Origin: Eutreptiella sp. 'Long Island Sound 2002'
Taxonomy: Eukaryota; Protista; Euglenida
Assembly (NCBI GenBank): GCA_964036045.1
Contig: OZ038378.1
Location: 198,834,001-198,898,000 of the forward strand
Length of the DNA: 64,000 bases
Reading direction: 5' to 3'
Shown: positions 18,901 to 59,657 of the stretch, piece after piece
How the letters are laid out: every line of letters starts with the position of its first letter
Position numbering within the stretch: the stretch's first letter is position 1
Notes under the pieces: generated by a model
What the model saw: the letters and a program-made list of their open reading frames with translations, nothing else
Told to the model about the DNA's origin: nothing
Databases searched by the model: none
Program-made: the position numbers and the translations under genes

Positions 18901-21900
18901 TGCCTCACTGTCTGGGGGCAGTGGGCAGCGGAACTCCTGCAATGCACTGCCTCACTGCCTGGGGGCAGTGGGCAGTGGAACTCCTGCAATGCACTGCCCC
19001 ACTGCCTGGGGGTATTGGGCAGTGCAACTTCTGCAATACACTGCCGCACTGCCTGGGGGCAGCGGGCAGCGCAACTCCTGCAATGCACTGCCTCACTGCC
19101 CTGGGGCAGTGGGCAGTGCAACTCCTGCAATGCACTGCCTCACTGCCTGGGGGCAGTGGGCAGTGCAACTCCTGCAATGCACTGCCTCACTGCCTGGGGG
19201 CAGTGGGCAGCGCAACTCCTGCAATGGGTGGTCGGAGTGTAGTGCCTGGCCTGTGGGGATGTACTACTGGGCGCACCGGCCTGGGGGGATGGGGAGTCCA
19301 ACCCAGGGGGCGGTCGGGGCATCCTTCAGGGCCCATGGGGGGCCATCATCTTCGGAGAACCGGGCGCACCGGCCTGGGGGGGACGGGGAGTCCAGGCCAG
19401 GGGGTGGTCGGAGTGTAGTGCAGGGCCCATGGGGAGGCGTCATCTGCTAATAACCGGGCGCACCGGCCTGGGGGGGACAGGGAGCCCAGCCCAGGGGGTG
19501 GTCGGAGCCTCCTGCCAGGGCCAATGGGGGGCCATCTTCTTCAGAGAACCGGGCGCACCGGCCCGGGGGGGACGGGGAGTCCTGCCCAGGGGGTGTTCGG
19601 ATCCTCTTGCCAGGCCAATGGGGGGCCATCTTCTTCAGAGAACCGGGCGCACCGGCCCGGGGGGGACGGGGAGTCCTGCCCAGGGGGTGTTCGGAGTCTC
19701 CTGCCAGGCCAATGGGGGGCCATCTTCTTCAGAGAACCGGGCGCACCGGCCCGGGGGGGACGGGGAGTCCTGCCCAGGGGGTGTTCGGATCCTCCTGCCA
19801 GGGCAATGGGGGGCCATCTTCTTCAGAGAACCGGGCGCACCGGCCTGGGGGGGACGGGGAGTCCTGCCCAAGGGGTGTTCGGATCCTCCTGCCAGGGCAA
19901 TGGGGGGCCATCTTCTTCAGAGAACCGGGCGCACCGGCCCGGGGGGGACGGGGAGTCCTGCCCAGGGGGTGTTCGGAGTCTCCTGCCAGGCCAATGGGGG
20001 GCCATCTTCTTTTGAGAACCGGGCGCACCGGCCCGGGGGGGACGGGGAGTCCTGCCCAGGGGGTGTTCGGAGTCTCCTGCAAGGCCAGTGGGGGGCCATC
20101 TTCTTCAGTGGGCAGTGGAACTCCTGCAATGCACTGCCCCACTGCTTGGGGGCAGTGGACAGTGCAACTCCTGCAATGCACTGCCTCACTGTCCCAGAGC
20201 AGTGGGCAGTGGAACTCTTGCAATGCACTGCCTCACTGCCTGGGGGCAGCGGACAGTGCAACCTCTGCAATGCACTGCCTCACTGCCCTGGGTCAGTGGG
20301 CAGTGCAACTCCTGCAATACACTGCCGCACTGCCTGGGGGCAGTGGGCAGTGCAACTCCTGCAATGCAATGCCTCACTGCCTGGGGGCAGTGGGCAGTGC
20401 AACTCCAACTCCTGCCACGCACTGCCTCACTGCCTGGGGGCAGTGGGCGGTGCAACTTCTACAATGCACTGCCGCACTGCCTGGGGGCAGTGGGCAGTGC
20501 AACTCCTGCAATGCACTGCCTCAGTGCCCTGGGGGCAGTGGGAAGTTGAAGTCCTGCAATGCACTGCCTCACTGCCTGGGGGCAGTGGGCAGTGCAACTC
20601 CTGCAATGCACTGCCTCACAGCCTGGGGGCAGTGGGCCGTGGAACTCCTGCAATGCACCGCCTCAACGCCTGGGGGCAGTGGGCAGTGCAACTCCTGCAA
20701 CGCACTGCCTCACTGCCCTGGGGGCAGTGGACAGTGCAACTCCTGCAATGCACTGCCTCGCTGCCTGGGGGCAGTGGGCGGTGCAACTCCTGCAATGCAC
20801 CGCCGCACTGCCTGGGGGCAGTGGGCGGTGCAACTCCTGCAATGCACTGCCTCACTGCCCTGGGGCAGTGGGCAGCGGAACTCCCGCAATGCACTCCTGC
20901 AATGCACTGCCTCACTGCCTGGGGGCAGTGGGCAGTGCAACTCCTGCAATGGGTGGTCGGAGTGTAGTGCCGGGCCTGTCGGGATGTACTACTGGGCGCA
21001 CCGGCCTGGGGGGATGGGGAGTCCAACCCAGGGGGTGGTCGGGGCATCCTTCAGGGCCTATGGGGGGCCATCATCTTCGGAGAACCGGGCGCACCGGCCT
21101 GGGGGGGACGGGGAGTCCAGGCCAGGGGGTGGTCGGAGCCTCCTGCCAGGGCCAATGGGGGGCCATCTTCTTCAGAGAACCGGGCGCACCGGCCTGGGGG
21201 GGACGGGGAGTCCTGCCCAGGGGGTGTTCGGAGTCTCCTGCCAGGCCAATGGGGGGCCATCTTCTTCAGAGAACCGGGCGCACCGGCCCGGGGGGGGCGG
21301 GGAGTCCTGCCCAGGGGGTGTTCGGAGTCTCCTGCCAGGCCAACGGGGGGCCATCTTCTTCAGAGAACCGGGCGCACCGGCCCGGGGGGGACGGGGAGTC
21401 CTGCCCAGGGGGCGTTCGGATCCTCCTGCCAGGGCAATGGGGGGCCATCTTCTTCAGAGAACCGGGCGCACCGGCCTGGGGGGGACGGGGAGTCCTGCCC
21501 AGGGGGTGTTCGGAGTCTCCTGCAAGGCCAGTGGGGGGCCATTTTCTTCAGAGAACCGGGCGCACCGGCCCGGGGGGGACGGGGAGTCCTGCCCAGGGGG
21601 TGTTCGGAGTCTCCTGCCAGGCCAATGGGGGGCCATCTTCATCATGCACTACCTCACTGCCCTGGGGCAGTGGGCAGTGGAACTCTTGCAATGCACTGCC
21701 TCACTGCCTGGGGGCAGCGGACAGTGCAACCTCTGCAATGCACTGCCTCACTGCCCTGGGTCAGTGGGCAGTGCAACTCCTGCAATACACTGCCGCACTG
21801 CCTGGGGGCAGTGGGCAGTGCAACTCCAGCAATGCAATGCCTCACTGCCTGGGGGCAGTGGGCAGTGCAACTCCAACTCCTGCCACGCACTGCCTCACTG

Positions 21901-23406
21901 TCTGGGGGCAGTGGGCGGTGCAACTTCTACAATGCACGGCCTCACTGCCTGGGGGCAGTGGGCAGTGCAACTCCCGCAATGCACTGCCTCAGTGCCCTGG
22001 GGGCAGTGGGAAGTGGAACTCCTGCAATGCACTGCCCCACTGCCTGGGGGTATTGGGCAGTGCATCTTCTGCAATACACTGCCGCACTGCCTGGGGGCAG
22101 TGGGCAGTGGAACTCCTGCAATGCACTGCCTCACTGCCCTGGGGCAGTGGGCAGCGGAACTCCTGCAACGCACTGCCTCACTGCCTGGGAGCAGTGGGCA
22201 GTGCAACTCCTGCAATGCACTGCCTCACTGCCTGGGGGCAATGGGCAGTGCAACTCCTGCAATGGGTGGTCGGATTGTAGTGCCGGGCCTGTGGGGATGT
22301 ACTACTGGGCGCACCGGCCTGGGGGGATGGGGAGTCCAACCCAGGGGGTGGTCGGGGCATCCTTCAGGGCCCATGGGGGGCCATCATCTTCGGAGAACCG
22401 GGCGCACCGGCCTGGGGGGGACGGGGAGTCCAGGCCAGGGGGTGGTCGGAGCCTCCTGCAGGGCCCATGGGGAGGCGTCATCTGCTAATAACCGGGCGCA
22501 CCGGCCTGGGGGGGACGGGGAGCCCAGCCCAGGGGGTGGTCAGAACCTCCTGCAAGGCCCATGGGGAGCCATCATCTTCCAATAACCGGGCGCACCGGCC
22601 TGGGGGGGACGGGGAGTCCAGCCCAGGGGGTGGTCGGAGCCTCCTGCCAGGGCCAATGGGGGGCCATCTTCTTCAGAGAACCGGGCGCACCGGCCCGGGG
22701 GGGACGGGGAGTCCTGCCCAGGGGGTGTTCGGAGTCTCCTGCCAGGCCAAGGGGGGGCCATCTTCTTCAGAGAACCGGGCGCACCGGCCCGGGGGGGACG
22801 GGGAGTCCTGCCCAGGGGGTGTTCGGAGTCTCCTGCCAGGCCAATGGGGGGCCATCTTCTTCAGAGAACCGGGCGCACCGGCCCGGGGGGGATGGGGAGT
22901 CCTGTCCAGGGGGTGTTCGGAGTCTCCTGCCAGGCCAATGGGGGGCCATCTTCTTCAGAGAACCGGGCGCACCGGCCCGGGGGGGACGGGGAGTCCTGCC
23001 CAGGGGGTGTTCGGAGTCTCCTGCCAGGCCAATGGGGGGCCATCTTCTTCAGAGAACCGGGCGCACCGGCCCGGGGGGGACGGGGAGTCCTGCCCAGGGG
23101 GTGTTCGGAGTCTCCTGCCAGGCCAATGGGGGGCCATCTCCTTCAGAGAACCGGGCGCACCGGCCCGGGGGGGACGGGGAGTCCTGCCCAGGGGGTGTTC
23201 GGAGTCTCCTGCCAGGCCAATGGGGGGCCATCTTCTTCAGAGAACCGGGCGCACCGGCCCGGGGGGGACAGGGAGTCCTGCCCAGGGGGTGTTCGGAGTC
23301 TCCTGCCAGGCCAAGGGGGGGCCATCTTCTTCAGAGAACCGGGCGCACCGGCCTGGGGGGGACGGGGAGCCCAGCCCAGGGGGTGTTCGGAGTCTCCTGC
23401 CAGGCC
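15978..23406. repeat. Composite satellite of alternating 47-bp (A) and 94-bp (B) unit blocks
   Basis: A = ggcagtgggcagtggaactcctgcaatgcactgcctcactgcctggg; period 47 checked at 19081/19128/19175. B period 94 checked at 22921/23015 and by ORF spacing. Approximate block starts: A 15978, B 16718, A 17465, B 19226, A 20106, B 20951, A 21644, B 22264. Confidence 0.97.
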
Positions 23407-24859
23407 TGTGGGTACTCCCTCCTACCTCTTAGCAACAGCAGGCAAGTAAGCAGGCAGTACCGGGGGCCATAACCCCGGGGTAACAGTATCTGGGACTCAA
23501 CGTGAGTCCTCTTAACCAGAAACAACCCCAAACACCGCCGGGGCTTAACTCCCGAACGTAACGGTGTTTGGGGCCCCCGTGGGCCTTTTGAGCCCATGGA
23601 GTGTACTGAGGCGTGGCTACCAGCTGTACTGTGGCCTGCCATACCCATTTCTGGGCTCGCCTCAGTACGGCCGGTCGAGTCCGGCTCTGGGGGTTGCGCA
23701 CTAAACTGGCCCCGGGGGGGGGGCATTTACCCTGTTAAGCATTAGTTACGGCAGTAGGCACTATTCATTACGTTAGGGTATTACTCAGCGCATTTGTTTA
23801 CCCCGCAGACATGCCCCTTCCAGTGGTGCGCTCACCTTTGGGGCTGCCTTTGGGGGATCGGGGGCTGTTACCCCTCCCGGACGCCCTCCCTGGTGTTGGC
23901 GCCGGGGTGGTGGCCGGGGGGCCTTATACCGTACCTAAAGGATGTTGGATACCGATACCGGGGCGTCCTACCGGACGGGGACAGGGACTGTGTCTCCGGG
24001 CATTGCCATCTGGCTTACAATCGACTGACCCATATTCAACGGCTGTTGGTACGGAAGCCTGCTCCACTCCAGTCCTCAACCACTCAGGCCAGCTGCATAT
24101 TCCTCCACATACCCTCGCACATGTTGCAGGGCGGGGGGTCGTTGTTGGGGCCCCCCGCGCATGTCCGCGCCACTGGCCATCCTCTCCTCCCAGGCACCGC
24201 GCCTCTGCTAGGGCGGGGGCCCCTCACATGCACCCTCCAGGGCCCTTTCCACCTGCACACCTGGACGCTTGCCATGAAGACCCCGCATTGGAGCCTCCTC
24301 GTCGGCGCGCCCGGGCCCAGTTGTTCACGCGGCCGGCCGCCGATGCGGGGCCCTGGAGGCGCGCCGCACGGGCGCTGCCAGCCTGTGAGAGGGGCAAGGG
24401 CAGGAGAAGGGGGTGGGGGGGGGGCAGTGGGCAGGGGAGGCGGCACGGAGTGGCTGCGGGAGGTAGTGCATGGGGGGCACCGAGAGCTGCATGGGGGTGT
24501 GTGGGATGGAGTTGGGGCAGAGGGCCCTGTGGGTGGGGCAAAGGCGCGGGGGGGGCGCATGTCCGGGCTCCTGCGTGGGCTGGTGCGTGGGCGGGCGCGT
24601 AGGGGAAGAGAGGAGGGGGAGGCTTGGTCAGCCGTCCTCTACGGAGGGTCGCTGACCGTTCCCAGGGCCAAGGCGGCCGGCACTAGGGGCCGCGGGGTCC
24701 CTGGGGATGGTGCTTGGCCCTGGGACGTGCGCGCACCCGACACTGTTAGTACACCGCCTATTGGCAGTGCCCGGGCCCTGTCGTCGGGGGCTTCGCACCC
24801 GGCACCCAGCCCGTGAGTAGAGCTGGGGAGTACTCAGGGTGCGGTGTGGTGTGGTGTGC

Positions 24860-44190: not shown

Positions 44191-44609
44191 AAAAGCAGTG
44201 GAACTGGAACTGATGGTGGTTGGATCAACAGTGACGCACATGGCAGGACAGGCACAATTGTCTGTTATGCAGCCCCAGAGGGACGTCTATCTTCGTGTTT
44301 TTCAGAGTTGCAATGCACCTCCGCAGCGCTTGCCCCCAGTTCCGAGGCAGGCTGCCGCCGGGAGCCCCAGACCCTGAGGAGGGCGCTGATGAGGATGGGG
44401 ACGGTGGTCCAACGGTGTTTGCAGTGTGGCACCGCTGGCTGGCCCTAGAGCAGCTGCTGGCGGATTGCGAGGAGGCCAACAAGACGGCCTTGGCCCGGCT
44501 TCTGCTGAAGCAGTACTCCAGCATCACGTGGCAGCTGCAGGCCATGGGGTGTCCAGGCCCGCCATGGCACAGCTCCGAGCCTCCATGGCAGTCTCCCTCA
44601 GCGTGCACG

Positions 44610-44990
44610 CTGGGCGCGCTCGAAAGCACCATCGGACACTTGGAAGCCGCCGCCGGGATTGCAGGGCTGGTCAAAGCCGTGCTGGTGCTCCTCCATGAGA
44701 ATGACGTGCTGCGGCAACCGCCTCAACCGCCTCAGTCCTCACCTGTGGCCGGGTTCTCCCCGGTGGTGTTCATGTACAGCGGACAGGGCACCGCCTTTGT
44801 TGGCATGGGCCATGAGCTTTTCGACGCTGAGCCAGTGTCCCGGAGCGCCTTGACAGAGTGCACGGCCCTCATGGACGCGCAACTGCCAACCCCGTTGCTC
44901 TCAGTGATGCACCCAGCCATTGGTGGGGGGGGCGTTCAACGCGTTGTATTTGCAGGTTGCGACTTTTGCGTTGCAGTATGCGCATCCAGC
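44610..44990 (+). pseudogene. Type I polyketide synthase fragments (KS C-terminal piece fused to AT N-terminal piece)
   Basis: LGALESTIGHLEAAAGIAGLVKAVLVLLHE is the KS GHxExAAG motif. VVFMYSGQGTAFVGMGHELFDAEPV is the AT start. After a poly-G frameshift comes NALYLQVATFALQYA. Confidence 0.85.
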
Positions 44991-45021
44991 AGCCAGCACC
45001 CTGGGCCCTCCAGGAATACCG

Positions 45022-45243
45022 GATTTGGACTCAGCAGAAGAAGTGCCTGCACACTGCAGCATATTGGATTTGGTAGAAATGCCTGCACACTGCAGCACAG
45101 CCATATTGGATTTTGTGTACAAAAAGCCTGCACACTGCGGGTTAGCCGTATTGGATTTGGTAAAAGAATTGCCTGCACACTGCAATCTGGGCGTAGTGGA
45201 TTTGGAAGAAGAAACGCCTGCACGCTGCAACACAGGCACATTG
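45022..45243 (+). repeat. Five frame-preserving 42-45 bp repeats encoding D(L/F)..PA(H/R)C...(L/V)
   Basis: Unit lengths are 45, 42, 45, 45 and 45 nt, with a conserved gcctgcacactgc core. Confidence 0.9.
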
Positions 45244-45416
45244 CCCCCCAGCCTCCACCCTCTAGTGATGATAGTGCCTATGATATGTCACCGTCTTGGG
45301 AACCCGCAGTGGGAAAGAGTAACAACGGGTACTCCCATGCCCTCATGTTTGATGTGAAGGATCCAGTCTCGGTTGTCTCATGTGTCTTGGCTGAAGACCA
45401 GCAGGGTGTGGCAAGT

Positions 45417-45635
45417 GCCTTTGTACTCGTGGTAGGATTGACCAGCAGGAGTGTGTTTTTTTGTTTCCGTCCCAAAGAGAGCATTAAAAGTTTTCAATGC
45501 CGATTAGCAGAGACGGTTGGGGCTCCTGCTGGTTCTTTTTGGTTGAAGGTGGCCGGGAGATGGGTAGGGCCAGGTTGTGTTGGGGATTGGATGGAAATCG
45601 AAAGCTGGGTGAGCGTGGTATGGCGAGGGATTGGA
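45417..45635 (+). pseudogene. Ubiquitin-like domain fragment
   Basis: FVLVVGLTSRSVFFCFRPKESIKSFQCRLAETVGAPAGSFWLKVAGRW...SWVSVVWRGIG follows ubiquitin-fold spacing and ends in an RGxG-like tail. Confidence 0.55.
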
Positions 45636-45646
45636 GAACAAGGGCC

Positions 45647-47382
45647 CCAGACGTAGTCATCCATTGTGCAAGGGGAGCAGTGAAGAACACTTTCAAGGCC
45701 CTTCTTTGTGCACATTCCACAGTCTTGAAAAGCATGTTGGAAGGTCAATGGCGGGAGTCCCGCGAAGCCTCAATTTCCCTCACTGATTTTGAGGAGAGCA
45801 CGGTTACAGGTTTTTTGAACCTATGTGCTTTTGGCATTGCGCGACTCAGTTGGTATGATGCACTGTAATTGTTCAGGTTGTACCATTTGTACAATATGCA
45901 TTTGTACCTGGACAGTGTGCGGCGAGTGCTACGTCGCTTTGTAGACAGTACCACCGCCATATAGCTATATGCCTTTGGCCGGTTGCTTGACCTGTCTCTG
46001 AAGAACATAGCTGTTAGCTACCTGGTCCCCCGGTGTCTGCTTGGGCTTGGGGCTGGTGTCTGAGGGCGGGGAGATGTCTTCCTCGCGAGGGTCACGGTCC
46101 GCCAGCACTGCCATGACCGCCGTGATGTGCTCAGTGGTCGTGGACCATAGCCCCCGATCCCATGCCCGGTTCATCGCCAGCATCGCCAGGTCCCTGAGCA
46201 CCTTAAGAAGCATCCCGGTGAAGTGCTTCATCTTGCAGATAAAACCATTTTGGACGATATGTGTATGGAGGCAGTAACAGAATTGATAAAGGATGACCAT
46301 TTTGTTGCAGATGAGAGGGAGATTTTCAACTTTGTGTGGAGATGGGGAAGACACCACCAAAAAGAAGACGAGCACCTACACCAAACTATAGGTCCCCTTA
46401 TGCCACTGTTGTGCTGGAATTTGATGGACAGCGCACACTTCAAAAGGCCGCACAGTCTCTTGGCATGGAACGACTACCAAAAGTTTCTGCCATATTGCCT
46501 CGCTGGCGTTCTACACTGGATGCAGGCACAGTGTTCTGGTTGCAAAAGATTGACACGGCAACAACCAAGAGTTACATTTTTGAGAGGCCAATTGGAATGA
46601 ATACTCTACATTCAATTGACACACCCCTGTTTGAGGTAGGACGATTCATAGGGTATGTGCACAGTACCGTACAACAGGCAAATATTTGCCTTGAAATCCG
46701 CCCGCAACCTTTGTACCCCTGTGACGGTCTGTTGCTTGTGTGTGTGTCTGCACTCAAGTCTGGGGTTCCCTAGGCATGGTCTTTTAGACGCTGTTGTCGC
46801 AAAATGACTAATTCTTTCCACTTTTGGTTCAAGTTGAGCAAATGCCAGCAACACTCAAAGAAATTCAATTCTCGTCATGTGTGCAGGTTTGAGGTGCAGG
46901 TCCGGGCTGTAGATGCATCATGCAAAGCATCCACGCTTCTTTAACTGAAGGAAAGCCAAATGTTGGGCGGGCATAGGCACGTTATGGAAAAGCACACAAT
47001 GCAAATCAGAGTCCCCAAAGTTGCTTTTTACAGGGATGCCCATGCATTTTTCCACCCCTTTGATGCTTTTGGGGTTGGGTGGAGGCTAGACATTCGTTTC
47101 TGCTACAACGATGAGCGCAGGTCTAAGTATGTTCTGGTCCGCAAGCATAAATCTGGGGTTTTGCACACGCCATTTCCAGGAAGCACCTACGTTGCCACCT
47201 TTCCACATCCAAGTGGGAGTCTAGATCTTTTGAAACAAGGTTCATCAGAACTAAAATTGCGTAATGGGGCGGTGTCAGGAGAGGTGACGATTACGTGGAA
47301 GGCAGCAAACCCATGGTGCAGTTTTGCACAAAGCGATCAGCATATCATTGTACAGTCCTCTTTGCTGTACATGCATGCATGA
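45647..47382 (+). pseudogene. BTB/POZ-BACK protein pseudogene with a possible MATH-like C-terminus
   Basis: BTB: PDVVIHC...KALLCAHSTVLKSMLEGQWRESREASISLTDFEE, with in-frame stops at 45866 and 45962. BACK: LIKDDHFVADEREIFNFVWRWGRH, in the same frame. Downstream PFDAFGVGWRLDIRF resembles a MATH strand (low confidence). Confidence 0.8.
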
Positions 47383-50018
47383 CAGCAGCTATGCTTCCAG
47401 TAGCACAGTCTCCTTCGGCTGCTAGGTTGATCTCAAGTCTGGTTGGTCATTATGTCGTGCTATGTTCCCGGCAAAGTGGTATGGTCCCATGGCACTGGAA
47501 AGACCTAAATGGCCCTGGAAAATGGAGAAGTGTTGTGACAACCGTGTGTCTGCTCCCACCGTAGGGATGCTTCTCGGGGTAAGGAGTGGGTGATGTTGTA
47601 CTTTTGTCCAGAAAAATAACCAGGGTTTCAAAGTGTTGCTTCTACTGCTAGGGCGTGACTGGCTACTTGCTGGTGATCACTAGCTGGGCCTTACATGATG
47701 AGCATAGGTAGGTGGAGAGTCGGGTCCATCATGACACCCAACCCCTGATCATACCTTCCAATAAGATGGCATTAAGGGCCATACGGCAGACTGCTCAACT
47801 TCTTTGTACCAGACCCAACACTCTGCATATTCCAGTGTTTCTTGAGTCTCAAGGTAAGGTGACCAAAACAACACCACATGTTGATCATGTCAGCGTTGCG
47901 TTTGTTGTTTCACCTGCAAAGCCGCAGAACCCTTTGAACCCCGAGTGCCATTCAGGAATGCTGTGACATCTGCCTACCTGCTGCCGTGGGTGACCATCTA
48001 CTTGTTTGTGATCACCGGCTGAGCCTCAGTGCCTCACCACCTTTGGTTGACCAACACCTGCCAGCAATTATTTCCCATTGCCAGTCATGAATTACTGAGA
48101 ATTTACGTATCTCTGCTTGCGTTGCAACCTACTGCATAGGTTCTCTCGGTTCTTCCTGTCTTGTTGATTGCCCAAGGAGTCCTGCCTTTTCCAAAAGCAC
48201 GTACGGCAAAAGGCACTTTTACCTGTGCAAACCAAGGACTATGTGCCCCCAACCCCCCAACACCCAGGCATTATGCCAACCGCCCCCCAAGCCCCCCTTT
48301 GCGAGAATAGGGTGTGGACCGGCGGTGAGACAGTCAGGGATGGCTCGATTTGCCTATTGCAAGTAAATCACCAGCTTTTTTGCTCATTTCCACCACATCC
48401 ACTCCTTTCCGGGTTGATTTCTCCCCACCATGGGGACTCTGAGAAGGCAAGGGTGATGTAGCTATATTGATATCCCTCCACGATGGGGACCCCAAGAAGG
48501 TAGAGGTATAGATCTCTCACCACCATGGGAACCCTTAGAAGGCAGCCTTGATGTAGCCATTTGACTCAACCCCCTGGTGCTATTGAGGAAACCGGGCCAA
48601 TCTTTGTTACATTTTTCCATTGTGTTGCACTCCGATGTGTTGCCATGTATGTGATAAGTGATGCAAGGGGCGGATCATCATTTGCTCTATTCTACTTGCA
48701 CATCCATTGTGAAACAGGCACCTTGAGCTCAGTATATGGTGGCACCACAATCAGTTTCAGACCTGCTTCCATGCTATTGTGTGTTACCAAGTCCTTCAAA
48801 CTGCCAAAGGTACCACCGGTTGGCCTGAATTACCGGCAATACAAACCCGAGGACTAAGGGCTGAAATTGCCTATGGCGGGGCATTCAGTCAATGAGAACC
48901 GACCATACAATACTGCTTTTTTTGCCCCATGTGCACATCTGCTTCCCCAAGGGTGCATGGATTCTAGGGTGGTCGTAGTATAACTATTGGGCGCTGTGCG
49001 CGCATTGTGCGGAAACACCGGGGCTCTCGGTGTTCTGTGTTAGTGGCGTCTGTGGGGGAATGCCGTGCACACAGTGCACACGCAGTGCAAAGTTTTGTAT
49101 GTGAGCAAATACTTGAACCCTAGTTTTGGCCCCTTGGGGGAGCACTTTACGCAGCACGCGCACAGCGCGTGCGCGGTGCCAAGGGCCATACGAGGGGTAG
49201 CGAACCTGGCGCCGAATACAAAACTGGGTGAGGTACAACAAGATGCGAATTTGTGAAGGGTAGTCCCATTGCCCCTCCAAATATTGCGATAGCCATTGTA
49301 CCCACGGGATCTTAACAGTGATGTACACCACGGAAACGAAAGTTGGGTCCGACAATATCGCAGCCCAACGACAAGTTTCGCCCCACACCAACCGCTACCT
49401 TGTGCCATGGCTGAGCGTCGAGGGCGAGATCTTCAAAGAGCAACAATCGACATTTCTTACGCGCCTCGTCTTGCCCAATCTAGCACGGATGTTCAATGGA
49501 CAGCAACAAACAACATTTCCTACCCAAGAGTATCACGGATCAGGCCCAAATCCCTAGACGAGGGCCCCCGGGGTAGGAACTGTGGGTGCTTGGGTGGGCC
49601 AGAAGGCTGAATTTCCCCCCTATGTGCCCCCTCATGTGTTGGTTGTTATCTTGTGGGCTTTGCGGATTTGCTGTGCTAGCAGACAGGTGGCAGGCGATTT
49701 TGGGTGAGTTTCCTGGCAAGTGCACGCAGTGCCCATGCAGTGCGCACACAGTGCAACAACTTGGCCTGGATCACAAGGCAGAGGGATGTGGGGTAGCATC
49801 TATTCTCCAGAGCAGCCCTATAGCGCCAAGAGGCTCCAATGAACTGCTGCCTTCCCGCGAGAGGGCTACAATGTACAATTGTTTAGGAAATTGTTTTCTG
49901 CTTATGCCTGTGGGATTGGGGTTTTTTCCAACAGCGTGTCTGTACGTTCATGTGCTCATTGTTGGTGCTTTGGTATGGCACATGATCTGCAGCTGTCTCG
50001 ACTTAATTGTGCATGCTC

Positions 50019-50045
50019 ACTGTCTGAGTGTCTATTTTTTTTTCG
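50019..50045 (+). other. Spliced-leader exon relic (duplicated copy)
   Basis: ACTGTCTGAGTGTCTATTTTTTTTTCG followed by GCGCCATG, identical to 53471-53497. Confidence 0.85.
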
Positions 50046-50050
50046 GCGCC

Positions 50051-50344
50051 ATGCATTTCTTCCGCCCCCTGAAGAGCTCCTCAAAGACAGGATTAATCAA
50101 GCGCATGGCTGAGGCTTACCCCGAGGTGGAGGAGTACCAGGAATACTTGCCCAATGTAGAGTCAGAGTTGCGCATGCTCGCCCTCGAGTACTTGGGCTCC
50201 AAATTGGACGCCAACTACTGCATCGCTTTGCCAGAGGCGCAGGAGCTGCTGCTGCGGTTGGACGCCATCAGCAAATATGTTCAAGTTGAGCAAATGCCAG
50301 CAACACTCAAAGAAATTCAATTCTCGTCATGTGTGCAGGTTTGA
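50051..50344 (+). pseudogene. Truncated chimeric PLC 5' copy created by the duplication (97 aa)
   Basis: MHFFRPLK...LDAISKY is identical to the PLC N-terminus, then VQVEQMPATLKEIQFSSCVQV* is read from the BTB-pseudogene sequence across the junction. Confidence 0.85.
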
Positions 50345-53300
50345 GGTGCAGGTCCGGGCTGTAGATGCATCATGCAAAGCATCCACGCTTCTTTAACTGA
50401 AGGAAAGCCAAATGTTGGGCGGGCATAGGCACGTTATGGAAAAGCACACAATGCAAATCAGAGTCCCCAAAGTTGCTTTTTACAGGGATGCCCATGCATT
50501 TTTCCACCCCTTTGATGCTTTTGGGGTTGGGTGGAGGCTAGACATTCGTTTCTGCTACAACGATGAGCGCAGGTCTAAGTATGTTCTGGTCCGCAAGCAT
50601 AAATCTGGGGTTTTGCACACGCCATTTCCAGGAAGCACCTACGTTGCCACCTTTCCACATCCAAGTGGGAGTCTAGATCTTTTGAAACAAGGTTCATCAG
50701 AACTAAAATTGCGTAATGGGGCGGTGTCAGGAGAGGTGACGATTACGTGGAAGGCAGCAAACCCATGGTGCAGTTTTGCACAAAGCGATCAGCATATCAT
50801 TGTACAGTCCTCTTTGCTGTACATGCATGCATGACAGCAGCTATGCTTCCAGTAGCACAGTCTCCTTCGGCTGCTAGGTTGATCTCAAGTCTGGTTGGTC
50901 ATTATGTCGTGCTATGTTCCCGGCAAAGTGGTATGGTCCCATGGCACTGGAAAGACCTAAATGGCCCTGGAAAATGGAGAAGTGTTGTGACAACCGTGTG
51001 TCTGCTCCCACCGTAGGGATGCTTCTCGGGGTAAGGAGTGGGTGATGTTGTACTTTTGTCCAGAAAAATAACCAGGGTTTCAAAGTGTTGCTTCTACTGC
51101 TAGGGCGTGACTGGCTACTTGCTGGTGATCACTAGCTGGGCCTTACATGATGAGCATAGGTAGGTGGAGAGTCGGGTCCATCATGACACCCAACCCCTGA
51201 TCATACCTTCCAATAAGATGGCATTAAGGGCCATACGGCAGACTGCTCAACTTCTTTGTACCAGACCCAACACTCTGCATATTCCAGTGTTTCTTGAGTC
51301 TCAAGGTAAGGTGACCAAAACAACACCACATGTTGATCATGTCAGCGTTGCGTTTGTTGTTTCACCTGCAAAGCCGCAGAACCCTTTGAACCCCGAGTGC
51401 CATTCAGGAATGCTGTGACATCTGCCTACCTGCTGCCGTGGGTGACCATCTACTTGTTTGTGATCACCGGCTGAGCCTCAGTGCCTCACCACCTTTGGTT
51501 GACCAACACCTGCCAGCAATTATTTCCCATTGCCAGTCATGAATTACTGAGAATTTACGTATCTCTGCTTGCGTTGCAACCTACTGCATAGGTTCTCTCG
51601 GTTCTTCCTGTCTTGTTGATTGCCCAAGGAGTCCTGCCTTTTCCAAAAGCACGTACGGCAAAAGGCACTTTTACCTGTGCAAACCAAGGACTATGTGCCC
51701 CCAACCCCCCAACACCCAGGCATTATGCCAACCGCCCCCCAAGCCCCCCTTTGCGAGAATAGGGTGTGGACCGGCGGTGAGACAGTCAGGGATGGCTCGA
51801 TTTGCCTATTGCAAGTAAATCACCAGCTTTTTTGCTCATTTCCACCACATCCACTCCTTTCCGGGTTGATTTCTCCCCACCATGGGGACTCTGAGAAGGC
51901 AAGGGTGATGTAGCTATATTGATATCCCTCCACGATGGGGACCCCAAGAAGGTAGAGGTATAGATCTCTCACCACCATGGGAACCCTTAGAAGGCAGCCT
52001 TGATGTAGCCATTTGACTCAACCCCCTGGTGCTATTGAGGAAACCGGGCCAATCTTTGTTACATTTTTCCATTGTGTTGCACTCCGATGTGTTGCCATGT
52101 ATGTGATAAGTGATGCAAGGGGCGGATCATCATTTGCTCTATTCTACTTGCACATCCATTGTGAAACAGGCACCTTGAGCTCAGTATATGGTGGCACCAC
52201 AATCAGTTTCAGACCTGCTTCCATGCTATTGTGTGTTACCAAGTCCTTCAAACTGCCAAAGGTACCACCGGTTGGCCTGAATTACCGGCAATACAAACCC
52301 GAGGACTAAGGGCTGAAATTGCCTATGGCGGGGCATTCAGTCAATGAGAACCGACCATACAATACTGCTTTTTTTGCCCCATGTGCACATCTGCTTCCCC
52401 AAGGGTGCATGGATTCTAGGGTGGTCGTAGTATAACTATTGGGCGCTGTGCGCGCATTGTGCGGAAACACCGGGGCTCTCGGTGTTCTGTGTTAGTGGCG
52501 TCTGTGGGGGAATGCCGTGCACACAGTGCACACGCAGTGCAAAGTTTTGTATGTGAGCAAATACTTGAACCCTAGTTTTGGCCCCTTGGGGGAGCACTTT
52601 ACGCAGCACGCGCACAGCGCGTGCGCGGTGCCAAGGGCCATACGAGGGGTAGCGAACCTGGCGCCGAATACAAAACTGGGTGAGGTACAACAAGATGCGA
52701 ATTTGTGAAGGGTAGTCCCATTGCCCCTCCAAATATTGCGATAGCCATTGTACCCACGGGATCTTAACAGTGATGTACACCACGGAAACGAAAGTTGGGT
52801 CCGACAATATCGCAGCCCAACGACAAGTTTCGCCCCACACCAACCGCTACCTTGTGCCATGGCTGAGCGTCGAGGGCGAGATCTTCAAAGAGCAACAATC
52901 GACATTTCTTACGCGCCTCGTCTTGCCCAATCTAGCACGGATGTTCAATGGACAGCAACAAACAACATTTCCTACCCAAGAGTATCACGGATCAGGCCCA
53001 AATCCCTAGACGAGGGCCCCCGGGGTAGGAACTGTGGGTGCTTGGGTGGGCCAGAAGGCTGAATTTCCCCCCTATGTGCCCCCTCATGTGTTGGTTGTTA
53101 TCTTGTGGGCTTTGCGGATTTGCTGTGCTAGCAGACAGGTGGCAGGCGATTTTGGGTGAGTTTCCTGGCAAGTGCACGCAGTGCCCATGCAGTGCGCACA
53201 CAGTGCAACAACTTGGCCTGGATCACAAGGCAGAGGGATGTGGGGTAGCATCTATTCTCCAGAGCAGCCCTATAGCGCCAAGAGGCTCCAATGAACTGCT

Positions 53301-53470
53301 GCCTTCCCGCGAGAGGGCTACAATGTACAATTGTTTAGGAAATTGTTTTCTGCTTATGCCTGTGGGATTGGGGTTTTTTCCAACAGCGTGTCTGTACGTT
53401 CATGTGCTCATTGTTGGTGCTTTGGTATGGCACATGATCTGCAGCTGTCTCGACTTAATTGTGCATGCTC

Positions 53471-53497
53471 ACTGTCTGAGTGTCTATTTTTTTTTCG
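53471..53497 (+). other. Spliced-leader exon relic directly upstream of the PLC start codon
   Basis: It differs from the Euglena gracilis 26-nt SL exon (ACTTTCTGAGTGTCTATTTTTTTTCG, recalled from the literature) by one substitution and one extra T. It is not followed by a GT donor. Confidence 0.85.
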
Positions 53498-53502
53498 GCG
53501 CC

Positions 53503-56316
53503 ATGCATTTCTTCCGCCCCCTGAAGAGCTCCTCAAAGACAGGATTAATCAAGCGCATGGCTGAGGCTTACCCCGAGGTGGAGGAGTACCAGGAATACTT
53601 GCCCAATGTAGAGTCAGAGTTGCGCATGCTCGCCCTCGAGTACTTGGGCTCCAAATTGGACGCCAACTACTGCATCGCTTTGCCAGAGGCGCAGGAGCTG
53701 CTGCTGCGGTTGGACGCCATCAGCAAATATGATATGAATAAGTGCAAGCACTGCCAAGAGCAGGTGGCGGTGTTTTTCGAGGAGCTGGACACAGGCAAGG
53801 CCCGTGCCCTGGATTTTCACCATTTTGTGCAACTATGGCGGAAGGCACTGGACCTGTATCCTGAACTGGACGAAGTGTACCAGAAGTGCACTGCACGATC
53901 TTCCAAGAATTTTGCAGACCAAAATACTATGTCAATGGATGAATATGACCAATTCTTGGCTACTCACCAGGGCATTTGGAGTGATGAAGCCCGCAGTTCC
54001 ATAAAAAAGCGCCTTCCAGAGAGTGTCCAACGAACAAAGCGGCTCAGCCGAAAGGAGTTCGAGCAAGAGTTCCGCAGCCCTTGGTACCAATGGACACCGC
54101 CACTATGTCCCCATCCCGTGCAGCCCATGGACCGCCCTCTATTGCACTACTGGATCTTTTCCAGCCACAATACATATTTAGAGGGCAACCAGTTGACCTC
54201 TTACTCCTCTGCGGACATGTACAAACGTGCCCTCCTGGATGGCTGCAGATGCGTGGAACTTGACTGTTGGGATGGCTTCGATGGAGAACCCATCATATAT
54301 CACGGATACACCGCCACTTCCAAGATCCTTTTTAAAGAGGTTGTGGAGGCCATCCGGGACACAGCCTTCACGACATCCCCATATCCTGTCATCCTCTCTC
54401 TGGAAGTACACTGCACTCTGCCTCAGCAGGAGAAGATGGCTACTATCCTCAAGGAAGTACTGGGCTCCTTGCTTAAGTGGCCACCCACCTGCCAAGTCTC
54501 TATCGACAGCAAAGAATTTACTCCCGACGGCCTTCAGCGCTGCATCCTCGTCAAGAACAAGACCCTCCGGGACCGTTACTGGGAAGAAGAGCAAGATCCT
54601 CCCCTCGCAGATGACTGGGACAGGGATATGCGGCAGCCAGAGCATGTCCCCAGGCGAAGAAGCACCTGTGACCTTCCTGATGAATTGAAGTCCAGCTTCA
54701 GCATCGAAACTGACGAGGTTTTTCAGATGAATTTCAGCGGATGTGGGCCTTGTTTAGGAGGAGACCCTGACAGCGCTTCAAGACGCACCATCCGCAGGAG
54801 ATCAGCAGCGGAGACAAAGATGGATGACAAAGGCTGGAAGGTGATAGGGGGCGCTGCTCCAAGACATGCAGTGCGCAGTACTGGCACAAGGAGAGTGGAA
54901 AAGACTTCTGTACCATTTGATCCCAACTTGCAGCAGTCTTTCAGTGAGCCCTGCCTCGTCCGAACATTCAACGACCTCAGCCTGCATTCACTGGAATCGA
55001 TCCCTACATTGCAGACAATTGAGATGGACAGCCAGCGCCAGGACACAATAGGGTGCTACAGCAGCCGACAAGACACCCTACAAAGCCAGCAAATCCAAAG
55101 CCGACAAAGTGCTGCTTGCCTGGGCAGTCCGGATTCTAGCAGAGGCACGACGAACACGGATCCTGGCAGCCAAGAAGGTACCCAACGGACCAGCCACGTG
55201 TTGAATGAGGCATCTCTTTCACTAATGGAGGACAGAGATTCCTGTGAGCCCGTTGACCTTATCGCTGATGATGATAAAGACATCAGTTTTCACCGGACGC
55301 CCCCAACGCCCACGCGTGGCTTGCGTTGCTCCATCAGCTCTGGCAGCCCTCAGGGGCTGGCTAGCCATGGCTTCAGCCCCAGAACGCCCATTAACAGCCC
55401 ACACAGCCCACACAGCCCATTTAGCCTCAGGCCAATAAGGCGTGACAGCACTTGCAGCAACCCAAGCAAACGCAATGCCAAGATGGTGCATGTGGAGTTG
55501 TCCCGGATCACATGGATGATGGCAGTGAAATTCAAGACCATTGAGCAACGCATTGTTGAGGCTGACCACTTCGAAGTGTTTTCGCTGAAGGAGCTGAAAG
55601 CCAAAGAGTTGACCCGCAAACAGAATTCTGAGTTCCGCTTGCTCAACACAAAGTGCTTCTCTCGCACGTACCCTGAAGGCAAAAGGGTCACCTCCACCAA
55701 TTATCGCCCCCTTCCTTTCTACTCTGCTGGCTGTCACATGGTGGCCCTCAACCTCCAGACGCCAGATCCTCCGGTGTGGCAGACACGCGCGCTATTCTCC
55801 ACGAACAATAACTGTGGCTATGTCCTCAAGCCACCTCACATCCTGAATGAAGCGGCAAGTTCTGTCCAGCCCATTCGCCTGACGGTGACTGTGATATCAG
55901 GGCGGTGGTTGACCGGAGAGCGGGGCACACAGGGTGTGCAACCTGCCGTGGAGGTTAGCCTGATCGACCCAGACAGTACCCAAAAGCAGAGCGACAATAC
56001 TACGGCACACTGTGGCAACGTCTACAACCCCGTGTGGGAGGAGACTTTCACCTTTGTAGTGACCGACCCGACGGTCAGTTGCCTTACTTTGAAAGTGGTG
56101 GATGGCAATTGCATGAAGTTCAGTGACGATTTTGTCGCACAGAACACAGCAATGGTCTCGGCACTAGAAATGGGCTATCGCATCGTCCCCTTGTACCAGA
56201 AGGATGGCGCGCCCATTCCCAAGGCACATTTGCTGGTGCATTTGCACAGGTCAAAAGGCCCTGACCTGTGCAGCACCTCGTACAAGTCTGAGGTTGAGGA
56301 TCCGCATCGGGAGTAA
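53503..56316 (+). CDS. PLC: Phosphoinositide-specific phospholipase C (EF-hand, X, long linker, Y, C2), intronless, 937 aa
   Basis: X box: [41 protein letters not shown] box: [29 protein letters not shown]2: [19 protein letters not shown]-like [15 protein letters not shown]. No stops. The start ATG was chosen because it follows the SL relic. Confidence 0.97.
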
Positions 56317-58647
56317 GGCAGCCCACGGCGACGGGAAGGCGTTGGAGCGGGTGCCGTGAGACCACAGCCTGACCACTGGCGCTTTACTGTTACCGGTACA
56401 GTCCATGTCCGCCACCATGCAGACCACTGCAGAGGCCGAGGAAGTATCAGCCTCCGATAAATGAACATCAAATTGATGTTAGAACAATTTATGATTGAAA
56501 ATACACCAAAGATTTGCAAGCGGTGAAAACCAAAAAACTATCCGGTTTTGTGCCAAGCCCCGGCCCCCCTTCTCCGAAATGTAAAAAAAGAACACCTGAC
56601 TGACATTTCTAACAACCTAGATGCACCAAAGTCTTACCTGTTCCAATGGTGTACGGTGTGTCGGAAGGAAGTTTCGAGACCATAATAGGCCCTCGCCCAG
56701 CCCCACTGAGCCCGGGCCTGCGTCTGGGATGGTCCTGGGAGGTTCCTTGGTGCTTCTGCCAACTGTTCAGCGGAAATGCCCTCTGAAACCACAATCAGCA
56801 CGGGAAAAGCGGGGAAATGCCCTTTGTGGACGCTTCAATGCGGGCTACGTCGCATGATGCGGCAGGTGGCACATCGGAAAGTGCTCCGGGCCAGAGCCGT
56901 GTAGGGAAATCCTGGCCTTTACCGGCGGATGCGGGGGCATCAATACTTGAGACCCACCCCCGAGCCCGCGCCTGACCCCAATGCAGACCCGACACCCTTA
57001 GGCATTCTCAACCATGTGCAGCCGCAGCATGCCACAGCACCCGTTTTTCGGAGCCGCACATGGGGGTTTTGAAGCATCCCGCGGCACCAAAAGTTTTGCT
57101 TCGTTTATGGTGATTGACATTTGTCTTGTCTGCTCCGTCTGCTCCGTCTGCTGTGTCTGCTCTGTTCGCACCGGACACATTCTGTCTGACCCATATCTTC
57201 TCGATTATTTGTCTCGTCATGGTTGAGTCAACACCACCATCAAATACACTACAGACGATCCGGATGGTGAAAGTGATCAATTTGACTCAACAGCGTGGTG
57301 CATGTTGTCTTTTGTTCAGGTTCCCACAGATGCCTAGGTACCTACATGTGCAGGTAGAAGCATGCCGCAGCAGCATGCCGCAGCACATGCCAAGGGACTG
57401 AACATGCTTGGTCATACTGTCAACTACGACGCCACAGATGTGTTTGTCATAGTATCCTCTGTGCTGAGGCGCGCCTGCAGGTGATGCCCATGGATTGCAA
57501 GCCTCCTGCCGCGCTGCTGGCCTCTCATGTTGTGCAACAGCTACTTGTGCGCCGTTTCCTGACCCCACCTCATGCCTCATCTTCGTCCTCGCCCAGCAGC
57601 CCCTCACTGCCCAACCACATTCCCGACTCCTGGAATTCCTTCTGCTGGGTGCCCTCAAGGAGCACAGCAGTGCGCTCGGGGCCAGTTTCTTGCATGCCCT
57701 TACGGAGACAACCCCTTGGTGGTAAGCACGGTTGTGTGGTTGGGATAGGTGGCGAAACCTCCAAGCCGCGCGTGCACCGCGTCAAATGCTCCCCCAAGTA
57801 TTCCCCTAGGTTTGTTCCCCTAAACTTGGAACCAAGCCAAGCACAGCATTGCTTGGGAGGCTGAAGGCTCAAACACCTCCGGACACCAAGTGGCGGCAAG
57901 CCAACCGAACGGGTGAGGCCGCCAGAGCAAGGATATCTAGCCCAATGTGGTGTTGCCTCCAACCACATGTCTATTCTGTCCCATCCATTCCCCCTTGATT
58001 GAGCATTGTGTACCATGAGTCACCCGTTGGCATGTGCGGCGGCATTCCCAACAACCTCAGGTACTAAGGATTTGTTATTCGCCGTCCCAATGTGTGCACA
58101 ACAGTGACAGTTTTCAGCCCCCACAGCTCATGCCCAGCGGCACACGCTCCACACCCATGCCACTGCTTGTGTTGTGTCCTGAGGAGTCCCCAGGGGATCT
58201 AGCGCTGCAGTCGGAGTAGGGCAATGGAGCTCCTTCTGCGGACGCCCTCCCTCGACCTTTGGCAAGGGGCTCAGGACAGGACCGACAGGGTCCACGTTGG
58301 AGATTTTGTGCAGCCTCGGGCTGCCATGCAATTGAAGTGTTGGGAACATGGTGCGGCCCTAAACGAACTGTTTCGCACCTTCTGCACCAGGTTTTTCAAT
58401 ACATCATGACTGGCCCCGTCAACGTTACACCTCCCTCCTGAATGCTTTCGAGGGTTGTATGATAAAGTAAAGTGGAGGTGCCAAAACCCCCTTGCCCCCC
58501 ATTGACAGAGCTGCATGTCGGTTCCCACTTTCTCTGACCATCTCCGTCGCCCTAACCCTTGACGTGTCCTTGAGGATGGGACTGTTCGTTTTCACAACAT
58601 TCCGAAACGTTGAAACGGTGGACTAGCGGATGCCGGCGGCTGATCAG

Positions 58648-58905
58648 TGGGGGCGCCTTAAGCACAGTGCGCACGCAGCGCGCGCGCAGTGCAACTATTT
58701 GGGCGTCTGGCCGTAGTAGAAACCCATACTTTGTGGTATTTTGGGCATCATTGTTGTTTGGTACTAGGTTTTGATGCATTGGGGTTATGGTTATTTTGGG
58801 ATTTTCACCCTGTTTCACCCATTTGTACCTTTTTGCACACATTTTTTGCTCATTTCCACCACACCCACTCTTTTTCTAGGTTGATTTCTCCCCATCATGG
58901 GGAAC
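58648..58905 (+). repeat. Dispersed repeat family R1 copy
   Basis: Aligns with 1685-1950 (gcagtgcaactatttgggc...cccatactttgtg...ctaggttgatttctcccc). Confidence 0.8.
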
Positions 58906-59657
58906 CCAGACGGCAGGGGCTATGTAGCCAATCACTTGTGGGCCACTTGTGATCCTGTCTCCCGCACCACGCGTTCTGAGAATCTCAAGAATCCCCTCCT
59001 CCAAAGGATGGTGGGTATCTTTCCGAAGGAGATTCAACCCCGGAGGAGAGGCACGCGAAGAATGACCCCACCCCGCGATGCCGTCTTGAAGGCACAGTAC
59101 TGTAGGCTGGATGGATTACCGCCACATTTGTGCCTACCAAGAGCTTGTTTGGTGCATGGGAGAGGTCCTCCAGCCAAGGGCCTGGTGACTGGCCTTGGCT
59201 TGGTGTGCCAACCTCAAGCAGCGTGTGGACAAGGGTGATCCCACGATGTCACCAAAGGTAGTTTACAACTTTCTTGAGCTGGGGCAGTTTGGGTCGCCTA
59301 ATTCTAAGGGCGTTTCAAAGGGGCGTGCCCGGGGGGAACATAGTCTAAAAGTAGCACACAGTGTGCGCGCAGTGCAAGGATTCCCCCAATGGTTGTGCAG
59401 TTGCATGTTCCTTTGGGGCCCGATTTGTACAACAGCAAGGATAAGGAGGACGGGCGGCTGCTCGTGTCCCAGCAACCCACGGTGGGACAGCCTGAGTTTG
59501 CCCGGAAGTATCATTCCCACGCGCCGGCCGGCTGTGTGCTTGGCTATCGGGGTGTGCTTGAGGGTTACACCAAATCAGTAGTGGCGGGGTTTACACCATG
59601 GGCCAACAGCCAGCAGAGGGGGAGTGGCACAGTGACGCTAGCAAGCTGTTAGTCCAA

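Follow-up and report, generated by a model that had tools for sequence, protein, structure and literature searches.

The locus described here lies in the genome of the euglenid Eutreptiella sp. 'Long Island Sound 2002' and consists of an intact gene for a phosphoinositide-specific phospholipase C (PI-PLC, or PLC), preceded at a distance of five nucleotides by a copy of the spliced leader (SL), an exon that is normally added only to RNA. The stretch of DNA that was analysed, called the window, is 64,000 nucleotides long (positions 198,834,001 to 198,898,000 of the forward strand of contig OZ038378.1, here C1, in the 2.28 Gb assembly GCA_964036045.1), and positions are those of the window unless a contig is named. 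Around the gene, the following features can be distinguished:

52508 to 53218, no strand assigned: high-copy dispersed repeat, with k-mer depth up to ~1e5 and hundreds of genomic matches; both ends (52508 and 53218) are loose
53219 to 53469, + strand: flank 5′ of the relic, 251 nt, unique in the genome, presumed to be insertion-site DNA or the present-day outron
53470 to 53497, + strand: SL relic, the SL exon over its full length (C-ACTGTCTGAGTGTCTA-T9-CG), altered by one T>G and one added T; internal AG at 53479-53480
53498 to 53502, + strand: GCGCC, 5 nt between SL and start codon, remainder of the former 5′ untranslated region (UTR)
53503 to 56316, + strand: PI-PLC gene, uninterrupted, of 937 codons and a stop codon; its parts are an EF-like N-terminus, X, a long disordered linker, Y and C2
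56317 to 56456, + strand: presumed 3′ UTR-derived stretch, unique, 140 nt, with no poly(A) tract at its end
56457 to 56644, no strand assigned: dispersed repeat of 188 bp, with a 92% identical copy at C1:199701742, 0.8 Mb away

Read directly, the letters 53470-53497 of the + strand are C-ACTGTCTGAG-TGTCTA-T9-CG. The SL-RNA genes of the same genome provide the reference, namely an exon ACTTTCTGAGTGTCTA-T8-CG followed by GTATAT, with an intron that begins GTATATACTCGC. Compared with this exon, the relic shows a T>G substitution at 53474 and one additional T. In particular, its 3′ limit is exactly the exon/intron boundary of the SL, and the sequence that comes next is not the SL-RNA intron. A 21-nt SL core, searched with up to 3 mismatches, matches the window twice and is absent from 100 dinucleotide-preserving shuffles, the second match (50024-50044) being a copy made by a tandem duplication described further on. 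The relic cannot be recognised as an SL-RNA gene: the sequences downstream and upstream of it differ from those of such genes, and the Rfam scan of the window found no family, 5S rRNA included, while the control scan of the SL-RNA loci L004 and L058 does show the 5S gene. The G of the relic is also present in two SL-RNA/5S units on contig C21 (L058 and L059) and T9 variants are common among relics, so that the PLC relic may be nearly or fully undecayed. These two units (G000:C21:165744 and 204166) carry the G at leader position 4 (ACTGTCTGAG...), have a divergent intron, GTATGCATTCGC, and adjoin a 5S rRNA gene; it is possible that they represent a minor SL-RNA species and the source of the G in the PLC relic. 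As for the five nucleotides before the ATG, euglenid mRNAs that carry the SL are reported to have very short 5′ UTRs (PMC3621762). An earlier interpretation based on the letters of the window alone (the sequence-only reading) had described a near-perfect Euglena-type SL exon, GCGCC after it, and next the start codon of a PLC frame open over 937 codons, and each of these elements reads as it stated.

The encoded protein is built like a eukaryotic PI-PLC. Pfam detects PI-PLC-X at residues 209-353 (1e-56), PI-PLC-Y at residues 671-778 (9e-31) and C2 at residues 792-892 (1e-12), and in an alignment to PLC-gamma1 and PLC-delta1 the catalytic and Ca-binding motifs, including SRTYPEG, are all in place, which bears out the earlier remark on the catalytic motifs. 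The likeness to the delta/zeta-like core (PDB 1DJG and 9BCZ; gamma-1, 7Z3J) resides in the X and Y barrel halves, the C2 domain and the catalytic His, Asn, Glu and Asp, whereas the window protein differs in having no detected PH domain, no Pfam EF-hand and an unusually long, low-complexity X-Y linker of ~316 residues. Residues from ~90-104 onwards align to the EF region of PLC-zeta and PLC-gamma structures. The nearest relative is a paralogue in the same genome, with 49-58% identity; an exact-protein look-up returned no record of the 937-aa product, and a scan of JGI metagenomes no match to the GCGCC-ATG junction. With regard to the reading frame, the start at ATG 53503 stands, but the open frame in fact extends upstream to 53038. 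The in-frame extension 53038-53502 was considered as coding sequence and rejected, as it has no Pfam match and the closest paralogue starts level with ATG 53503.

The presence of this arrangement in genomic DNA and in RNA was followed in assembled short-read (Logan) contigs of four runs, placed on 50100-56090. Two of the runs, X1 and X3, are two samples of one study, with contig sets of 888 and 1,340 Mb; their run type is not on record, and the size of the sets, the presence of both unique intergenic DNA and the open reading frame (ORF) among the contigs, and repeats that reach a depth of 1e5 indicate whole-genome DNA. In both of them a contig without mismatches spans 53192-53731, that is, the unique flank, the relic, the ATG and the first 76 codons, at a depth matching that of neighbouring unique DNA. 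A second mismatch-free contig of 2,785 nt, again in both, covers 53702-56486, starting 199 nt after the ATG and ending 170 nt past the stop codon; the unitig end at 56486 lies 30 nt inside the 188-bp repeat. Since the relic and its unique upstream flank stand together on mismatch-free contigs in two samples, the relic is genomic and not a product of cDNA contamination. The sequence-only reading had proposed to check the junction with genomic long reads or PCR; in these short-read contigs the SL is found where it was expected. In addition, contigs from an RNA metatranscriptome (X8) lie with 0 mismatches (100% identity) at 53505-53789, 55479-55708 and 55824-56003, and none lie on the unique intergenic DNA 50100-51700, which is modest evidence that the PLC ORF is transcribed.

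Leader copies outside SL-RNA genes are very numerous in this genome. The exact SL 20-mer has 4,822 matches and the reversed control pattern 0; the motif is therefore very common, a point that the sequence-only reading had missed, but its frequency is not that of a random word. The exact 22-mer ending in T8-CG occurs 3,503 times and is followed by GTR in only 1,347 cases. In other words, the proposed scan for leaders without the GT of the intron returns at least 2,156 copies that have no SL-RNA intron next to them and so are not SL-RNA genes. Among the first 30 SL matches, ten are SL-RNA genes and the other 20 are leaders joined to diverse non-intron sequence, at least 11 of which precede ORFs of at least 400 aa; an OTU protease and a C-type lectin are among the encoded proteins. 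Five multi-copy families show similarity between their copies from the first bases of the leader onward and unrelated flanks upstream of it, a pattern that, to judge from the alignments, is the signature of inserted copies of SL-capped RNAs. A gapped pattern search found nested relics at 49 sites genome-wide. Specifically, L063, L065, L066 and L070/L071 show, in different genes, a full leader followed by two to four TGTCTA-T8-CG reiterations, which implies that the AG inside a relic was reused for re-splicing and the product retroposed again. The product SL+TGTCTA-Tn-CG that had been predicted is thus found, with T8, as a fossil at other loci. A second nested form, also recurrent, retains AGTGTCTA (L061, L064, L067 and L068; L069 and L072 are also nested), with a cut site after CTG that is not a canonical AG acceptor, and most of the AGTGTCTA cases fall in one repeat family. 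Finally, in L057 (G000:C16:27186321 region; same family as L022 and L025) an inverted segment of the family's own downstream sequence abuts the leader. Counted from the leader, the inverted part starts at ~2,643 nt, and the direct part stops at ~2,639. This is a twin-priming-like 5′ inversion, pointing to target-primed reverse transcription of the long interspersed element (LINE) type. Copies that start at the SL, nested relics and this one inversion show that SL relics mark retroposed RNAs here, as was proposed earlier, and SL-tagged retroposition is, on the sequence evidence, pervasive in this genome.

Some leader-bearing copies show peculiarities at their 5′ side. One family (L075, L077-L086, L088, L017 and L028) has a (TG)n tract, then a 5′-truncated leader (TCTTTCTGAG...T9CG), often GCGCC, and a CTGACGAG motif ~60-90 nt further on, which fits the CUGANGA core of hammerhead ribozymes and has no Rfam match at gathering score; three copies stand in tandem on C20 with ~1.6-kb spacing. 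In L014, L015, L016, L018, L030, L064, L067 and L068, C-rich tracts lie directly 5′ of the leader, that of L068 being preceded by CCCTAA-like repeats. This suggests a non-templated or microsatellite-like extension of the 5′ junction, or a target preference. In L066 (~597-1489, oriented), a copy of the L014 family, broken off mid-ORF 887 nt after its leader, abuts the leader of an unrelated retrocopy, so that L066 is a head-to-tail chimera of two SL-headed copies.

The best explanation of the locus, to which we assign a probability of about 70%, is that the PLC gene is an SL-tagged retrogene, derived from a reverse-transcribed and integrated trans-spliced mRNA, and that it is a working gene within a genome-wide recycling of mRNAs. 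A mature SL-trans-spliced PLC mRNA would have been reverse-transcribed and integrated into the chromosome, and this mRNA origin would explain both the intronless coding region and a leader that is templated in the chromosome, 5 nt away from the ATG. At the scale of the genome, such recycling was probably driven by LINE-type target-primed reverse transcription. As neither a parent nor a poly(A) tract nor a target-site duplication is present, two arrival histories of the cDNA are both compatible with the locus: it may have entered a new site, the parent being later lost and the 3′ end overwritten (the 188-bp repeat is one candidate), or it may have been exchanged for the parent at the original locus, through homologous recombination on the 3′ side and end-joining on the 5′ side. 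The 3′ end that the retrocopy had at first may be concealed by the 188-bp repeat or have given way to it. The copy would now be transcribed from upstream DNA and given a fresh SL by trans-splicing. Two candidate acceptors lie 5′ of the ATG, CAG 53442-53444 and the relic AG 53479-53480, and both AG dinucleotides named earlier (53443-53444 and 53479-53480) are present in the sequence. Use of the CAG would give SL+CTGTCTCGAC... and leave a 4-codon upstream ORF from 53465, whereas the relic AG has pyrimidines at 13 of the 20 upstream positions and leaves no upstream ATG. The relic AG is the most likely acceptor, giving SL+TGTCTA-T9-CG-GCGCC-ATG, and it is favoured because the fossil TGTCTA-T8-CG reiterations elsewhere show that relic AGs are used in this organism. 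The copy is probably a working gene: it is intact and catalytically complete, the assembly contains no other copy of its lineage, and it is present in RNA.

Several observations weigh against this origin. First, a near-identical or intron-bearing parental PLC, which the sequence-only reading had expected, is not found in the 2.28 Gb assembly by DNA or protein search, and only distant paralogues are present. Apart from the locus itself, the best DNA match has 74% identity over 329 nt, to the paralogue on C8, and protein identity is 52-58%. Second, this closest paralogue (P0001, 975 aa, G000:C8:23435132-23436940; L044, L045) is a single open frame with no relic upstream, and so are the paralogues on C10 and C19; no relic, decayed ones included, was found in the 200 nt before the ATGs of these three genes. 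Since three relic-free paralogues are also intronless, the absence of introns is not diagnostic. The paralogues on C4 and C14 are exon-sized pieces, split inside the X domain where the window gene is continuous. Third, no A-run of at least 8 follows the PLC stop codon, and the search for a target-site duplication found nothing above 9 nt, the length of the longest word common to the flanks, which is chance level. Consequently, of the 'full-length processed retrogene' claimed earlier, the 5′ end is shown and the 3′ end, with neither poly(A) tract nor target-site duplication, is not. In addition, X1 and X3 probably come from the assembly's own project, and the contig of the European Nucleotide Archive in which the locus is found matches the window without a difference for 16.8 kb and is hence not independent. 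As to expression, RNA contigs cannot show the 5′ end of a transcript; the first X8 contig starts at 53505.

The sequence-only reading had missed a perfect tandem duplication upstream of the gene, in which the relic itself is involved. Self-BLAST aligns 46827-50279 to 50279-53731 with 100.0% identity over 3,453 nt, and the elements concerned are the following:

46827 to 50278, + strand: duplication unit 1 (3,452 bp; self-BLAST 100.0%)
50018 to 50045, + strand: duplicate SL relic, identical to the relic 53470-53497
50051 to 50344, + strand: truncated PLC stub, 76 codons up to the junction 50279/50280, then read-through to a stop; part of a mechanical 252-aa ORF, 49586-50344
50279 to 53730, + strand: duplication unit 2 (3,452 bp), with the relic and codons 1-76 of the complete PLC at its 3′ end

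In the 3′ part of each unit the high-copy repeat (at 49056-49766 in the first unit) is followed by the unique flank of 251 nt, and this in turn by the relic and PLC codons 1-76. The sole strong match to the PLC N-terminus, P0121, is the window's own 252-aa stub. In X1 the pieces of the unit have a depth of 74-100 against 49.5 for the ORF contig, and in X3 of 68-95 against 29.2, a ratio of roughly 1.7-2.8x, and the unitigs break at exactly 53731; raised depth and break together fit a real duplication, present in two or more copies. A very recent tandem duplication of 3,452 bp would thus have copied relic and 76 codons, leaving the truncated stub upstream. A second, 'empty site' copy of the 251-nt flank was sought in the genome and none was found. 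The idea that the 5′ repeat elsewhere abuts an SL directly, hinted at by a read joint 53218>53470, was dropped after a pattern search found no such junction.

Among the alternatives, the one that survives best is itself a variant of the retrogene explanation and differs in the route of integration. That is, the parental gene would have been replaced in place by its own SL-bearing cDNA, an event that would erase introns and outron acceptor, while the relic would remain where the gene had always been. It would account jointly for the missing parent, the missing poly(A) tract and target-site duplication, and the continued expression of the gene; there is, however, no direct evidence for it, and the other SL-tagged copies of the genome are clearly dispersed, with unrelated flanks and one twin-priming-like case, which argues that target-primed insertion prevails. 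In-place replacement is considered unlikely. A retrocopy so young that it is not (yet) under selection, with an ORF intact through recency alone and the prospects of a processed pseudogene, appears quite improbable. Recency would agree with the almost undecayed relic, given the G variant in L058/L059 and the common T9, and with a region in recent flux, as the 100% identity of the adjoining duplication indicates. On the other hand, a young copy should have a near-identical parent, and none exists; the ORF is found in the RNA library and the unique intergenic DNA is not; and the second sample, X3, shows 0 differences over the 2,785-nt contig 53702-56486 against 8 in ~1,490 nt of unique flank (~0.5%). 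The invariance in X3, the intact ORF, its position as sole copy of its lineage and the X8 RNA are hints of purifying selection on the PLC ORF, which is nevertheless not demonstrated.

It is very improbable that the 33 SL-like nucleotides were brought by another SL-bearing repeat, such as the 5′ end of the (TG)n family, to a place beside an ordinary intronless PLC. The 21-mer GTCTA-T9-CGGCGCC does have 15 exact matches in the genome, ten of which lie in the (TG)n-flanked family; one further match carries C in the wildcard position. That family, however, starts with TCTTTCTGAG immediately behind (TG)n, and the PLC relic, which has no (TG)n next to it, begins with the complete CACTGTCTGAG; only 5 nt are common beyond the SL, where chance matches are expected, by estimate, with ~3,000 relics in a GC-rich genome; and the fragment would need to end exactly at the ATG. 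A longer SL variant as the source of T9-CGGCGCC was also considered and set aside, as no SL-RNA gene with such an exon is found among the 16 matches and the overlap is, by estimate, within chance. Lastly, that the SL-ORF junction is absent from the chromosome, through assembly artefact or cDNA contamination, is hardly credible: the sole other assembly record is byte-identical to the window and not independent, and a 100% identical tandem duplication could in principle be assembler stutter, but the junction contigs 53192-53731 are free of mismatches in two samples at the depth of neighbouring unique DNA, the duplication is supported by the unit depth, two to three times that of the ORF contig, and by the break at 53731, and there are thousands of analogous loci in the genome.

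The closest counterpart of an SL-tagged retrogene is found in dinoflagellates, where Slamovits and Keeling reportedly described, in 2008, retrogenes with relics of the dinoflagellate leader (DinoSL) as a form of 'mRNA recycling'. The likeness to these DinoSL-relic retrogenes (PMC5585692, PMC6050394, PMC12014239) consists of the fossil of a trans-spliced leader in DNA before a coding sequence, nested relics that log repeated rounds, reuse of the relic's internal AG leaving 5′-truncated relics, and many intact ORFs. The differences are that the present case belongs to Euglenozoa and not to Alveolata, that the leader is 26-28 nt long with a T8 tract, and that no parent can be identified at the PLC locus. 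LINE-mediated processed retrogenes and pseudogenes of animals and plants are likewise intronless copies of spliced mRNAs, and a sister SL-tagged family shows the twin-priming-like inversion; the PLC locus differs from them in lacking a 3′ poly(A) tract and target-site duplications, its diagnostic mark being the 5′ leader. The Euglena SL-RNA genes, arranged in SL-RNA/5S rRNA repeat units, have the same 26-28-nt leader, which is there followed by GTATAT and the intron and accompanied by a conserved upstream block and a 5S neighbour, whereas at the PLC locus GCGCC-ATG follows and the flanks are unrelated.

A literature search found no report of euglenid SL relics or SL-tagged retrogenes, in keeping with the earlier remark that this recycling is not known to be well characterised in the group. 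The euglenid genome papers PMC11252322, PMC6366073 and PMC11170887 do not mention SL relics or retrogenes, and a review calls dinoflagellates a 'unique lineage' for the relic approach (PMC6050394). The single PLC locus is ordinary within its genome, and the class to which it belongs would seem to be a large-scale feature of euglenid genomes that had gone unreported. A tentative extension, held at somewhat less than even odds, is that this euglenid runs a dinoflagellate-like recycling genome-wide, with the leader giving a ready acceptor, and that the PLC gene is an 'orphan' retrogene that has replaced its intron-bearing parent. SL-capped mRNAs would then have been reverse-transcribed and reinserted thousands of times, and the pyrimidine tract and AG of the fossil leader would allow retrocopies that land in transcribed DNA to be re-spliced and expressed at once.

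If this holds true, SL trans-splicing would have come, by convergence, to favour gene duplication, the loss of introns and the inflation of the genome in a second eukaryotic supergroup. SL relics are a nearly error-free tag of passage through an RNA intermediate, a tool used so far essentially only in dinoflagellates, and they would offer a direct means to date and count retroposition, could help to account for a genome of 2.3 Gb with large gene families and many genes that lack introns, and would permit testing whether a retroposed leader aids the expression of the new copy. As to the locus itself, it holds a PI-PLC signalling gene that is probably functional and that exists only as a recycled mRNA. 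With respect to annotation, genomic SL sequences are mostly not SL-RNA genes, and procedures that map outrons by replacing the SL by AG mis-handle them.

Other parts of the window contain repetitive and fragmentary sequence. A large satellite array with 47-bp and 94-bp periodicities occupies 15980-23410 and gives rise to many spurious long ORFs in several frames. The open frame at 44295-45653 contains weak ketoacyl-synthase C-terminal and acyltransferase fragments and resembles part of a PKS/FAS-like gene. Another dispersed repeat of high copy number lies at 51828-52060 (=48376-48608), 1890-2013 and 58842-58928, with k-mer depth to ~1e5 in the DNA runs and consistent differences from the genomic copy at 51862-51863.

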